A stretch of DNA of 64,000 nt, taken from the sequence record MT708547.1; one strand, written 5' to 3'. Below are positions 5,073 through 55,917 of the stretch, in pieces. The stretch's first letter is position 1; each line of letters begins with the position of its first letter. The notes under the pieces were generated by a model. It saw nothing but the letters and a program-made list of their open reading frames with translations. It had not been told where the DNA came from and made no database searches. A program made the position numbers and the translations under genes.

Positions 5073-6197
5073 ATGTCAGTGTTTCAAAAAAATACAAAAT
5101 CACATTTAGAAAAGAATATGTTTTTTGATGAAGCGGTAGATATCCAACGCTTTGAAACTAACAAGTATTCTACCATTGAGAAATTAACCGAACAACAAAA
5201 AGGATTTTTCTGGAGTCCCGGTGAAGTTGATGTAAATAAAGACAAAATTGATTTTACTAAATTATCTGAAGCGGAAAAGCATATTTTCACTTCCAACCTC
5301 AAACGTCAGATACTACTTGATTCAGTACAGGGTCGTGGTCCAAACACGGTACTTCTACCACTGGCTTCGTTACCGGAAGTAGAAAATTTTATTGAAACTT
5401 GGGCGTTCTTTGAAGGTGCAATTCATAGTAAATCATATACTCATATTATTCGTAACATCTACACCAATCCATCTGAAGTATTTGATACTATGCTTGATAT
5501 TCCTGAAATTCTGGATTGTGCCGTTGACGTATCTAAGTACTATGATGATTTAGAAGAATACGGTACTTGGTATCGTATGCTTGGTGTTGGCACACATACT
5601 ATCAATGGTAAAGAACTTGTTATTGACATGTATGAACTGAAAAAGAAACTGTGGTTGTGCTTAAATTCCATTAACGTATTGGAGGGTATACGATTTTATG
5701 TCTCATTCGCTGCATCCTTTGCATTTGGTGAAAATAAAATCATGGAAGGTAATGCCAAGATCATTAGACTAATTGCGAGGGATGAGTCTCTCCATTTAGC
5801 AGCAACTCAAATGATGCTTCGTTTGTTGAAAAAAGAAGATCCAGACTTTGTTAAAATTTCTGAAGAATGCTATGATGAAGTCCAGAGTATGTTCTTGGAT
5901 GCTATTAAGCAAGAAGAAGACTGGGCTGATTATCTATTTAAAGATGGTTCTATTATCGGTCTTAATGCTGAAATACTAAAACAGTATGTTCGCTGGATTG
6001 GATCTAAACGTATGGCAGCAGTTGGAATTAAGTGTCCATATGCTGTAACGAAAAATAGCCCACTCCCATGGATGGAACATTGGATTAGTAGTGCGGGTGT
6101 GCAGGTTGCACCACAAGAAACTGAAATTAGTTCCTATGTAATTGGTGGTATAAAAGCCGATATTACAGAAAACACGTTCAGTACATTTAAACTATAA
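5073..6197 (+). CDS. nrdB: Ribonucleoside-diphosphate reductase class Ia, beta subunit
   Basis: FFWSPGEV, QILLDSVQGR, IHSKSYTHI, EGIRFYVSF, RDESLH, VAPQETEISSY. Confidence 0.98.
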   Translation: MSVFQKNTKSHLEKNMFFDEAVDIQRFETNKYSTIEKLTEQQKGFFWSPGEVDVNKDKIDFTKLSEAEKHIFTSNLKRQILLDSVQGRGPNTVLLPLASLPEVENFIETWAFFEGAIHSKSYTHIIRNIYTNPSEVFDTMLDIPEILDCAVDVSKYYDDLEEYGTWYRMLGVGTHTINGKELVIDMYELKKKLWLCLNSINVLEGIRFYVSFAASFAFGENKIMEGNAKIIRLIARDESLHLAATQMMLRLLKKEDPDFVKISEECYDEVQSMFLDAIKQEEDWADYLFKDGSIIGLNAEILKQYVRWIGSKRMAAVGIKCPYAVTKNSPLPWMEHWISSAGVQVAPQETEISSYVIGGIKADITENTFSTFKL

Positions 6198-6772: not shown

Positions 6773-7890
<1,118 letters not shown>

Positions 7891-52049: not shown

Positions 52050-52868
52050 ATGGCAAGAAAAGATATATTAGAACAAAAAGAATTAATATTAGATTTAATT
52101 TCCAAGAATACCGCAAAATCAACAATATGTAAGATTTTAAATTGTAAATCATCAACGTTAGATACGTATTTGAAAAAGATGGGTATTATATATAAAGGAA
52201 ATCAATCTGGTAAAGGAACAAAGAAAGGAACACATTCAAAATATGTAGAAGCTTCACATTTTCTTAATAAAAATTCATCAATATCATCTAATCAATTAAA
52301 ACTAAAATTATTGAGAGAAGGATATTTTGAACATAAATGTTCAAAATGTGAATTGACAGAATGGATGGGTAAACGAATACCAATTGAATTGGAACACATA
52401 GATGGTGATAATACAAATAACGAATTATCAAATCTATGTATGTTATGCCCAAATTGTCACGCACAAACCGATACATATAAAGGAAAAAATAAAAAATCAG
52501 TTCGTGAAAAGAAACATATACAAGAAATTTTAAATTTTGAAAATTCTTTTGAACGTTCAGAAATAAAAGATAAAGTTGGGAAGAAAATTAGAATTTCCAA
52601 AATTAAAAAATGTGAAGAATGTGGTAATGAATATAAAGGTAAAAATAAAAAATATTGTTCACGTGTTTGTATGCATTTATCACAAAAAAAATTTCTTTTG
52701 ACATACGAAGAACTTAAAGAAATAATTTGGAAATATCCAAGAACAAAAATAGGAGAAATGTATGGTGTTTCTGATAATACTGTCTTGAAACGTTGTAAAC
52801 TTCTTGATATAGAAGTTCCACCATTGGGATATTTCATAAGTTCAAAATATAAAGATAATAATCAATAA
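52050..52868 (+). mobile_element. Free-standing HNH homing endonuclease
   Basis: CSKCELTEWMGKRIPIELEHIDGDNTNNELSNLCMLCPNCHAQT; C-terminal Zn finger and HTH-like segment. Confidence 0.9.
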
Positions 52869-54203: not shown

Positions 54204-54231
54204 TTGAACAAAAAGTTCAGTACTGTATAAT
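54204..54231 (+). promoter_or_regulatory. Promoter for tRNA-Arg
   Basis: TTGAAC-N16-TATAAT with TGAAC-N5-GTTCA. Confidence 0.65.
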
Positions 54232-54372: not shown

Positions 54373-54401
54373 TTGAACAAAAAGTTCAATAATGATATAA
54401 T
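54373..54401 (+). promoter_or_regulatory. Promoter for tRNA-Ser(GCT)
   Basis: TTGAAC-N17-TATAAT with TGAAC-N5-GTTCA. Confidence 0.7.
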
Positions 54402-54577: not shown

Positions 54578-54708
<131 letters not shown>

Positions 54709-54766: not shown

Positions 54767-54825
54767 AAATTTTAATTTAAATAGTACTTGACAAAAATAT
54801 TCAGTACTGATACATAAAGAATATT

Positions 54826-55136
54826 GGCCCCTTAGCTCACGCTTTGGTTAGAGCAGACGACTCATCGATAAATGGTGACTTTCACAAGTAATTGTGATTG
54901 AAAAACTGGATGAATTCAGGGAAACCTTAACACATAATGGTGATGGCAATCCTGAGCCAAGCCCAATAAGCGTATTGGGAAGGTGCAGAGACTAGGTGGT
55001 TCAGCACGATCTTGCTGTGTAATACACCAATAGCGTCCGGCATCCTTATAGGATGATGATATAGTCCTTTCTATAATGAAAATTATAGGTAAAAAGAATC
55101 GTTTGGTACTGTGTTCGACTCACAGAGGGGCCACCA
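54826..55136 (+). tRNA. tRNA-Ile2(CAT), interrupted by a group I intron (exons 54826-54865 and 55097-55136)
   Basis: Joined exons give GGCCCCTTAGCTCA..GACGA-CT-CAT-AA-TCGTT..AGGGGCCACCA, closely resembling E. coli ileX. Confidence 0.92.
54866..55096 (+). mobile_element. Group I self-splicing intron, 231 nt, ORF-less
   Basis: AATTCAGGGAAACC (54913), GGCAATCCTGAGCCAA (54945), GAAGGTGCAGAGACTAG (54979), GATGATATAGTCC (55055); exon ends in U, intron ends in G. Confidence 0.92.
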
Positions 55137-55223: not shown

Positions 55224-55306
55224 TGGTAGTTGGCAGAGCGGCTTTTGCGACGGACTGTTAATCCGTGTCAGAAATGACAAGACTGGTTCGACTCCAGTAC
55301 TACCAG
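55224..55306 (+). tRNA. tRNA-Asn(GTT) with a long variable arm, CCA not encoded
   Basis: TGGTAGT/ACTACCA, ACGGA-CT-GTT-AA-TCCGT, GTCA-GAAA-TGAC arm, G73. Confidence 0.85.
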
Positions 55307-55371
55307 CATATAAAAAATGAACTTCAGAACAATAAATAATATCATAGAGGATATTATGAGGTCTGAAGTTC

Positions 55372-55917
55372 ATGGGAAGAAAGCAAACAGAAGAAACACG
55401 CAAAAAAATTTCTAATGCATTAAAAGCAAAAAATACAGTTTTACCCGAAAAAGAAATTATTGAAAAATACACAAACGGTATAGCTGTATATAAGTTAGCA
55501 AAAGAATACAAATGCCACAAAACAAGAATAAATTCTATAATTGAAGCTAGTGGTGTTAAACGACCAATCGCTACAAATAAAAATAGATTTTGTGAAATTC
55601 ATAAATGTAATTATGAAAAAAATCCACAAGGTAAGTGGAAATGTAATAAATGTGATATTCAACGTGTTTCTGATAGACGTAGAGAACTTAAATTACTTGC
55701 TGTGGAATATAAAGGTGGGTGTTGTGAAAAATGTGGATATGATAAATGCATAGCTGCGTTAGAATTTCACCATTTAGATCCAAATGAAAAAGATTTTGGA
55801 ATATCATCCAGTGGTCATACACGAAGTTTCGAAAAGTTAAAGATAGAACTTGATAAATGTATTATGGTTTGTGCTAATTGTCATCGTGAAATTCATGATG
55901 ATGAAAGAAAAGAATAA
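55372..55917 (+). mobile_element. Free-standing HNH endonuclease
   Basis: GGCCEKCGY..ALEFHHLDPNEKDF..ELDKCIMVCANCHREIH. Confidence 0.9.

Follow-up and report, generated by a model that had tools for sequence, protein, structure and literature searches.

Does a virulent phage carry a transfer RNA (tRNA) gene that becomes readable only once a group I intron has been taken out of its anticodon loop? The question is raised by a 64-kb stretch of DNA, called the window throughout, that is 100% identical to part of the genome of Klebsiella phage Muenster (MT708547.1, 346,937 base pairs; a window position is the record position minus 248,000). Muenster is a virulent jumbo phage of the genus Alcyoneusvirus, and the locus sits inside a tRNA cluster whose neighbouring members are called by ARAGORN as Leu(UAA), Gly(UCC), Arg(UCU), Ser(GCU) and Ser(UGA). 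Between a tRNA-Ser ending at 54708 and a tRNA(GUU) starting at 55224 the GenBank record MT708547.1 holds no feature, and in four near-identical phage records nothing is annotated under the match to the locus, so that the feature described here is an unannotated one. An initial annotation, made without database searches, had placed in this gap a tRNA-Ile2 gene interrupted by a group I intron. We consider it very likely that Muenster encodes a tRNA-Ile2-type tRNA (anticodon CAU, for AUA) that is split between positions 36 and 37 by a 231-nucleotide (nt) group I ribozyme without an open reading frame (ORF), and that the intron is a selfish member of a mobile family. The observation of a split tRNA with a group I intron is itself confirmed and lies far beyond chance; its anatomy, covariation, homologies and alleles with and without the intron are all directly observed. 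The gene consists of the following parts:

54826..54865, + strand: 5' exon of tRNA(CAU), with the 5' strand of the acceptor stem, the D arm (12-nt loop), the 5' strand of the anticodon stem and CAT at 54863-54865
54866..55096, + strand: group I intron, identified from Rfam RF00028, the ORF list and covariation
55097..55136, + strand: 3' exon of tRNA(CAU), with A37 and A38, the 3' strand of the anticodon stem, a 5-nt variable loop, the T arm and the 3' strand of the acceptor stem

By BLAST, the split gene occurs in seven jumbo phage records: Muenster, KP13-7, RCIP0023, phiKp_21, TH47, Turkey5 and OU509535. Those of Muenster, KP13-7 and RCIP0023 are identical and that of phiKp_21 differs by one position, while the Escherichia coli phages TH47 and Turkey5 (Asteriusvirus) carry a split gene about 89% identical to that of Muenster. 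OU509535 is a Klebsiella phage assembly with a split tRNA(CAU).

The intron, 231 nt long and ending in G, interrupts the tRNA right after CAU. The claim that it belongs to group I was borne out by the Rfam covariance model RF00028 (Intron_gpI), which matches 54840-55088 with 104.1 bits (gathering score 50; E 6.4e-26 for the 64-kb window); the match spans the full model (1-253), is untruncated and is the sole intron match in the 64 kb. All helices and the P, Q, R and S elements that had been read from the letters were found again where they had been placed:

54862-54867 with 54873-54878, + strand: P1, in which exon UCAU and intron CG pair with the guide UGGUGA, with U54865.G54875 at the 5' splice site
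54882..54897, + strand: P2, a hairpin with a GUAA (GNRA) tetraloop
54906..54912, + strand: 5' strand of P3, CUGGAUG, partner 55034-55040, seven invariant pairs
54916..54984, + strand: P4-P5-P6/P6a domain, with the conserved stretches AAUUCAGGGAAACC and GGCAAUCCUGAGCCAAGCC
54988..54994, + strand: 5' strand of P7, G-A-GACUA, partner 55062-55067, six invariant pairs, forming a pseudoknot with P3
54995..55028, + strand: extra nested hairpin between P7 and P3', 34 nt, supported by covariation
55034..55040, + strand: 3' strand of P3, CGUCCGG, from the Rfam match and covariation
55041..55055, + strand: P8 hairpin, whose closing pair is U-A, C-G or U.G depending on the phage
55062..55067, + strand: 3' strand of P7, UAGUCC, within the conserved GAUAUAGUCC element
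55071..55088, + strand: P9 hairpin, a single 7-bp helix with a GAAA tetraloop, followed by an 8-nt tail to the terminal G at 55096

P3, P4, P6 and P7 are fully paired in all sequences, and the terminal G is present in all phage, viral-contig and bacterial copies discussed below. P1 keeps 6/6 pairs in the five split genes that were aligned, with U.G at the splice site in 5/5, and the loop of P2 is of the GNRA type across the intron family. The guanosine-binding site of group I introns lies in P7, and the corresponding pair is presumed here. The extra hairpin comprises an outer helix (GGUG/CACC), an inner stem-loop (CAGCA-CGAUCU-UGCUG) and a conserved 3' internal loop, UGUAAUA. The longest ORF wholly within the intron measures 33 amino acids (aa), and a 38-aa ORF on the opposite strand also lies within it; no endonuclease motif is visible in either, so the intron does not have the endonuclease ORF of a mobile intron with its own homing endonuclease.

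Once joined, the exons give 80 nt whose minimum-energy fold is a cloverleaf with anticodon CAU, ending in the discriminator A and an encoded CCA (55134-55136). The expectation of an ileX-like tRNA ending in ACCA agrees with this fold and with the database comparison, in which the spliced tRNA is 82.9% identical over its full length to E. coli ileX/ileY. With a cut-off of E 0.01, matches were present in 5426/5426 complete E. coli genomes, the median genome having two such sites.

Anticodon CAU is common to Met and Ile2 tRNAs, and the exons might therefore form an elongator tRNA-Met rather than an AUA-reading tRNA-Ile2, in which case the intron would split a tRNA-Met gene. ARAGORN and most phage annotations do label the intron-less relatives as tRNA-Met, although these labels were assigned by programs that go by the anticodon only. 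Among the E. coli matches listed (eight rows spread down the ranking), however, all are annotated as tRNA-Ile and none is a Met tRNA, so that among these the tRNA body is closer to ileX/ileY than to Met tRNAs. The acceptor stem starts GGCCCC, like that of ileX, and carries C4-G69 and C5-G68, which are determinants for TilS. Both pairs are present in Muenster and TH47, while OU509535, whose exons differ strongly, has A4-U69 in place of C4-G69. The tRNA-Met alternative also sits poorly with the company that the gene keeps: AUA is frequent in the phage, at 14.7 per 1000 codons or 18% of Ile codons (53 long ORFs of the window, which has a G+C content of 31.5%), and the remaining tRNAs of the cluster likewise serve A/U-rich codons, all of them A/U-ending and rare in the host. 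An AUA-reading tRNA thus fits the codon usage and the companion tRNA set, and we regard a tRNA-Met gene as decidedly unlikely. As a tRNA-Ile2, the Muenster product would be expected to undergo lysidine modification, to be charged with isoleucine and to decode AUA.

That gene callers and tRNA scanners would overlook the gene proved correct, as seen from the blank in GenBank and from ARAGORN, which at its defaults did not call the split gene in the unspliced Muenster sequence. A tRNA scan of the spliced sequence, proposed as a check, gave a divided outcome: default ARAGORN made no call, and a threshold of 90% returned tRNA(CAT). The 12-nt D loop is the sole cause of the default rejection, since removing one T likewise yields tRNA(CAT). 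The spliced tRNAs of TH47 and OU509535 were called at defaults, and in intron mode ARAGORN found both of these genes, with the TH47 intron misplaced.

Are the two halves and the ribozyme maintained? Five split pre-tRNAs, among which only three lineages are really independent, were aligned to a structure derived from Muenster that consists of the cloverleaf, P1-P9 and the P3/P7 pseudoknot. Standard pairs occupy 98.9% of 439 pair cells, compared with 32-48% when the 3' partners are slid by 1-3 columns. Compensatory changes are found in 16 pairs. In the tRNA stems they affect four pairs of the acceptor stem, three of the T stem and one of the anticodon stem; elsewhere they affect two pairs of P9 and a single pair in each of P1, P2, P5, P8 and the outer and inner helix of the extra hairpin. 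In OU509535 the C-G pair of P1 at intron position +1 is replaced by G-C, P2 shows a G.U change in addition to its compensatory pair, and pair 100-121 of the P4-P6 domain changes from C-G to U-A in TH47 and Turkey5. Shuffled alignments reached the observed values in 0/500 cases on four of five measures and in 5/500 on the fifth. Between the Klebsiella and E. coli phage lineages the ribozyme core differs by about 7% and the exons by 11-15%. As the acceptor and anticodon stems covary across the intron, both halves are kept as one tRNA, and conserved pairing with two-sided changes is the pattern expected under selection for the tRNA and ribozyme folds.

The search of relatives for intron-less alleles, which the initial annotation had recommended, was successful, and the alleles of RaK2, PBECO4/A4, WPEC5 and Hallingskeid contain the exact empty site. 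RaK2, also an Alcyoneusvirus, has an uninterrupted tRNA(CAU) at the same locus and behind the same promoter-like element, with a different body (Rfam tRNA, 57.9 bits). In Erwinia phage Hallingskeid the uninterrupted tRNA is 91% identical to the spliced Muenster tRNA and its junction reads GACGACTCAT-AATCGTTTGG. PBECO4, A4, WPEC5 and many other Asteriusvirus phages hold an allele that corresponds to that of TH47 but has no intron; in A4, PBECO4 and WPEC5 it has G2-C71 and an encoded CCA, unlike the alleles of TH47 and Turkey5.

Intron and exons have different histories. In the comparison of Muenster with OU509535, P2-P7' is 98% identical (186/189), while identity does not exceed 70% and 53% in the two exons and is about 60% in the intron ends (P1 and P9). 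One ribozyme core thus resides in three different tRNA(CAU) bodies, which requires intron transfer or recombination. Both intron-plus lineages have the T-stem pair CTGTG/CACAG, compared with CGGTG/CACCG in the nearest intron-less alleles. This difference would fit co-conversion; as it concerns a single base pair, the indication is weak.

Several points weigh against a functional tRNA-Ile2 split by an active intron. The D loop of the Muenster tRNA is unusually long at 12 nt, and default ARAGORN rejects the spliced product. The allele of TH47 and Turkey5 (L003 and L004 1501-1808 in our locus numbering) is without an encoded CCA, ending in ACAA, and has a G2.U71 pair in its acceptor stem. P9 contains mismatches in Turkey5 and OU509535, the -10 hexamer upstream of the Muenster gene is weak, and a search for a P10 helix, in which the guide sequence would pair with the 3' exon, gave nothing convincing, so that exon alignment would rest on the anticodon stem. 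Alignment of this kind is reported for the Anabaena pre-tRNA (Zaug et al. 1993, cited in PMC3984707) and may apply here. The OU509535 exons, without C4-G69, may belong to a Met tRNA, and the Ile2 assignment is drawn from similarity to ileX together with acceptor-stem determinants rather than from a dedicated classifier.

Some of these points could also be read as signs of a relic, in which the intron splices no longer or too poorly and the phage relies on the tRNA-Ile2 of its host. The rejected D loop, the lost CCA with its neighbouring G.U pair and the P9 mismatches in two lineages would agree with such decay, as would the many related phages that are without the intron, some with a different tRNA(CAU) at the site. 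Decay is, however, hard to reconcile with 98.9% of cells being paired and with 16 two-sided changes spread over both folds despite the divergence of core and exons between lineages, with catalytic-core strands P3, P4, P6 and P7 that are all invariant, or with an Rfam model that is matched in full and without truncation. We therefore give the relic very little credence and continue with the split tRNA-Ile2 gene as the preferred reading.

From where would such an intron come? The intron is part of a large family of compact, ORF-less introns whose viral members lie mostly in protein genes, where its closest relatives are also found. Such ORF-less relatives are known in the terminase large subunit gene of Vibrio phages and as psbA intron 2 of cyanophage S-CBWM1, and BLAST and alignment show these to be homologous from P2 to P9, the extra hairpin included. 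The terminase intron of Vibrio phage R16F is 82% identical over 170 nt (BLAST), and the Muenster core is up to 84% identical to introns of uncultivated viruses outside tRNA genes, the highest value for a bacterial intron being 76%. These terminase and psbA introns are similar in size (about 215-265 nt), likewise without an ORF, and have the nested hairpin with its conserved GUAAUAC loop. They differ in that their P1 pairs coding sequence, while P1 of Muenster pairs the anticodon loop, and in that the Muenster exons can also pair through the anticodon stem. In Vibrio phage vB_VpaM_R16F the terminase gene is broken by four group I introns (L007 470-733, 1161-1392, 1611-1848 and 2284-2498) and is annotated as four separate 'terminase large subunit' coding sequences; phage 1.193.O is similar, with three introns in L008.

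IMG/VR and bacterial and archaeal genomes were scanned for the exact core 16-mer GATGAATTCAGGGAAA. In IMG/VR at least 120 loci were found, at least 87 of them with a downstream GAUAUAGUC-type element within 300 nt. Around the viral hits (120 loci) every T/G splice-site pair was joined and the product submitted to ARAGORN, also at a relaxed threshold, which revealed at least three split tRNAs: a tRNA(CAU) in L048, a tRNA(CAU) in L050 and a tRNA-Thr(UGU) in L119. All three introns lie between positions 36 and 37 and score 84-92 bits with Rfam. In the tRNA-Thr gene the guide GCAA pairs UUGU, while the CAU genes have a GUG-type guide; the guide thus tracks the anticodon. BLAST with the three viral-contig split tRNAs detected no further split tRNAs in cultured phages. 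The L048 contig holds two more Rfam tRNA matches of 122 and 124 nt (5919-6040 and 7031-7154, + strand), which may be additional tRNA genes with inserts. In L039 (1900-3292) and L083 (4961-6940), which hold the viral introns nearest to the Muenster core (83-84% identity), the intron is closely followed by a 363-aa ORF that we took from its sequence alone to be capsid-like, and an HNH-type ORF on the opposite strand adjoins these introns.

The bacterial and archaeal scan gave 121 matches to the 16-mer, where about 280 chance matches would be expected in 596 Gb; 76 of the 121 were without the downstream core element and were treated as chance. A compact intron core was present at 43 bacterial matches, and two more have the core element more than 300 nt away. 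As many as 41/43 of these cores follow CTCAT in tRNA-Ile2-like genes (L134-L253; e.g. L167 7527-7792, L190 3004-3234, L148 3062-3300). Their hosts are mostly Gammaproteobacteria, including Lysobacter, Luteimonas, Rhodanobacter, Dyella, Steroidobacteraceae, Woeseiaceae and Granulosicoccus, and the sources comprise genomes of isolates as well as contigs that range from 20 kb to megabases. Three of the introns were checked with Rfam and scored 51-78 bits. P1, the core motifs and the nested hairpin are common to the bacterial tRNA-Ile(CAU) introns and that of Muenster, and the idea that the Muenster intron is unrelated to bacterial tRNA introns was dropped once the genome scan had found these homologues. 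Folded alone, the P7-P3' segment forms the nested hairpin (an outer 4-bp helix and an inner hairpin) in 96/102 family members, with a 3' internal loop conserved as GUAAUAC or UURAUNAC and covariation in both helices.

A tree was built with IQ-TREE from 107 cores (P3 to P7', 169 columns), with bootstraps and a midpoint root; the alignment is short, and the sampling is biased by the exact 16-mer and does not cover the Azoarcus intron. All bootstrap trees contain a single clade of the bacterial tRNA(CAU) introns (100/79). Muenster, TH47 and OU509535 form a group of their own among viral introns, with the R16F terminase intron as nearest neighbour. L048 falls within a 100/100 clade of the bacterial introns plus 12 viral ones, outside of which the trio lies, and L119 groups with psbA-type viral introns. 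On well-supported branches, residence in viral tRNA genes needs at least three origins. In approximately unbiased (AU) tests, a single clade of all CAU-resident introns was rejected (p = 0.011), a clade of the six viral tRNA-resident introns was borderline (p = 0.048), and a clade of the trio with the bacterial introns was not rejected (p = 0.14), on the same short alignment.

This last result bears on a different origin, in which an ancestor of the jumbo phages captured a bacterial tRNA-Ile(CAU) gene that was already split and no phage intron invaded the tRNA. A clade of 40 bacterial tRNA(CAU) introns that agree with the phage introns in insertion site, P1, core motifs and nested hairpin speaks for such a capture, and the test at p = 0.14 leaves room for it. 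The free tree nevertheless places the trio outside the 100/100 clade of the bacterial introns and 13 viral ones, the single clade of all CAU-resident introns is rejected, and the core is closer to viral non-tRNA introns (84%) than to any bacterial one (76% at most). The exons, moreover, resemble enterobacterial ileX and phage tRNAs and not the tRNAs of intron-bearing Gammaproteobacteria, and one core is shared by three different tRNA(CAU) bodies. Capture of a split bacterial gene is in our view unlikely, and invasion of a phage tRNA gene is preferred. A broader proposal, which we put forward tentatively and with more doubt than confidence, is that phage tRNA genes act as a hitherto unseen bridge for tRNA introns, across which one intron family moves between protein and tRNA genes of phages and the tRNA-Ile(CAU) genes of bacteria. 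Phages might then have seeded the scattered bacterial tRNA introns or picked them up, and in mixed infections the intron could protect the phage tRNA gene from HNH endonucleases and spread by collaborative homing.

The kind of element is known from two sides, as introns in the anticodon loop of bacterial tRNAs and as compact ORF-less introns in phage protein genes. With the Azoarcus tRNA-Ile(CAU) intron the Muenster intron has in common a host tRNA gene with anticodon CAU and, as had been noted at the outset, an insertion directly after the anticodon; here the junction reads CAU/AAU. Both introns are small and ORF-less, use the anticodon loop for P1 and close P2 and P9 with GNRA loops, while the host is a virulent jumbo phage in one case and a bacterial chromosome in the other. 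The Azoarcus intron is not known to have the 34-nt nested hairpin that the Muenster intron carries between P7 and P3', which agrees with the earlier view that the latter is not a simple copy of the former. The P4-P6-P7 core presumably resembles the IC3 tRNA introns of Anabaena and Azoarcus, which we take to have no such insert. The Azoarcus construct has a 3' exon of 40 nt, as does the Muenster gene, and an intron of 205 nt against 231 nt here (PMC13168695).

A second affinity is with the IA2 introns of phages (Twort-like, T4 td), with which sequence is shared from P2 through P7 and in P9. Introns of Staphylococcus Twortvirinae are 72-79% identical over about 120 nt. Subgroup IA2 is defined by two hairpins, P7.1 and P7.2, between P7 and P3' and linked by G-U-A (PMC3428280, PMC4227781), and the Muenster intron likewise has extra structure at this place followed by a G-U-A motif. 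A Silviavirus (Staphylococcus) intron that is 79% identical over P2-P6 displays the two-hairpin form, UUCC-GAAA-GGAA, GUA and CACUC-AAGU-GAGUG. Muenster, in contrast, keeps the first hairpin and the GUA, and an enclosing 4-bp outer helix replaces the second hairpin; the P9.1/P9.2 extension is also missing, so that the extended P9 (P9.0, P9.1 and P9.2) is not formed. An assignment of the extra helix to classical P7.1/P7.2 was ruled out by the Silviavirus form and the published definitions. The Muenster intron is thus related to both IA2 and, by the presumed likeness of its core, IC3, and falls outside the IA2 definition.

How would the split gene be expressed? Upstream of it lies one candidate element:

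54788..54816, + strand: promoter-like element, TTGACA-N17-TACATA, read from the sequence, with the tRNA 5' end 10 nt downstream

The promoter scan does not list this element, whose second hexamer ends in A. It also precedes the intron-less tRNA(CAU) of RaK2, and in OU509535 the second hexamer of the corresponding promoter-like element is TATAAT. The tRNA-Arg and both tRNA-Ser genes have a TTGAAC-N16/17-TATAAT promoter-like element of their own directly upstream (54204-54231, 54373-54401 and 54580-54608, + strand), which suggests separate transcription of the tRNA genes rather than one polycistronic cluster. On the other side of the split gene, 55224-55307 (+ strand) encodes a tRNA(GUU) of 84 nt, called by ARAGORN and matched by the Rfam tRNA model with 46.8 bits, whose variable region bears an additional arm of about 12 nt. 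RaK2, A4 and Turkey5 have an ordinary tRNA-Asn of 73-74 nt at the place of this tRNA, and a long-arm tRNA with an Asn anticodon is unusual.

The locus is further marked by HNH genes:

55372..55917, + strand: free-standing HNH endonuclease gene of Muenster (GenBank product name), 181 aa, with NUMOD3 (Pfam) and an HNH-type C-terminus
Turkey5, immediately behind the split tRNA, and RaK2, behind the intron-less tRNA: 235-aa HNH type, 69% identical between both
After the split tRNA in OU509535: 141-aa HNH_3 type
Positions of the HNH genes at the tRNA(CAU) locus: window 55372-55917; L002 3925-4632; L004 1825-2529; L012 1741-2283; L005 1804-2229

The Muenster gene begins 235 nt downstream of the split tRNA and is 76% identical to the HNH gene directly after the intron-less tRNA(CAU) in WPEC5. 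TH47 has an apparently homologous start of an ORF of the 235-aa type after its split tRNA, and in Turkey5 and TH47 the HNH gene starts about 17 nt after the tRNA. Three unrelated free-standing HNH types thus adjoin the tRNA(CAU) locus, beside intron-plus and intron-less alleles, which gives the locus the look of a hot spot for genes of homing endonucleases. A further HNH endonuclease gene (52050-52868, + strand), similar to T5 F-TflIV according to the record, lies between tRNA-Leu and tRNA-Gly.

An ORF-less intron that adjoins free-standing HNH genes recalls collaborative (trans) homing as reviewed in 2014 (PMC3984707), and the Muenster HNH gene is a possible candidate helper for intron mobility. 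The situation is unlike collaborative homing in that the same HNH types also stand beside the intron-less alleles of RaK2 and WPEC5. With HNH genes beside intron-less alleles, a model in which the endonuclease cuts every intron-less allele fails unless target sites vary. The link between HNH genes and intron at this locus is only a hypothesis.

Taken together, splicing activity, promoter use and the route of mobility can be put into a conditional scheme. The split gene would be transcribed, probably from its own promoter-like element, into a precursor in which UCAU of the anticodon loop pairs with the guide sequence of the intron to give P1, while the anticodon stem, formed across the intron, would hold both exons together. 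An external guanosine bound at P7 would attack after U36, and the freed 3' OH of U36 would then attack after G55096, joining CAU to AAU and releasing the intron. The 80-nt product would already possess its CCA, and TilS of the host would convert C34 to lysidine so that AUA can be read. The intron itself is best seen as a selfish passenger and not as an invention of this gene, coming from a family that moves between protein and tRNA genes of viruses and the tRNA-Ile(CAU) genes of bacteria. As it is without its own endonuclease gene, its spread probably depends on recombination, perhaps helped by the neighbouring free-standing HNH endonucleases.

The novelty lies in the combination: cultured and sequenced phages of Klebsiella and E. 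coli whose tRNA gene holds a group I intron. The statement that characterised phage introns are mostly in protein genes is surpassed by the 2014 review, according to which all phage introns then known were in protein-coding genes and none in a tRNA despite the many phage tRNAs (PMC3984707). No later account of a phage tRNA gene with a group I intron was found in the literature, subscription journals being mostly outside the search. A well-supported case from cultured phages now fills this gap. As standard annotation misses a tRNA that looks functional, the tRNA inventories of large phages are undercounted. The phage introns are furthermore tied to a large and mostly unremarked gammaproteobacterial clade of tRNA-Ile introns. 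Plastids apart, a 2014 tRNA review gives cyanobacteria and alpha- and beta-proteobacteria as the only groups whose tRNAs contain group I introns (PMC4033280), and the reviews consulted name no bacteria beyond these three groups, while the bacterial clade here is mostly from Gammaproteobacteria. Besides the jumbo phages, at least two further independent invasions of viral tRNA genes are indicated. How tRNA introns move between bacteria, for which evidence is poor according to the review (PMC3984707), becomes testable with phages that are available.

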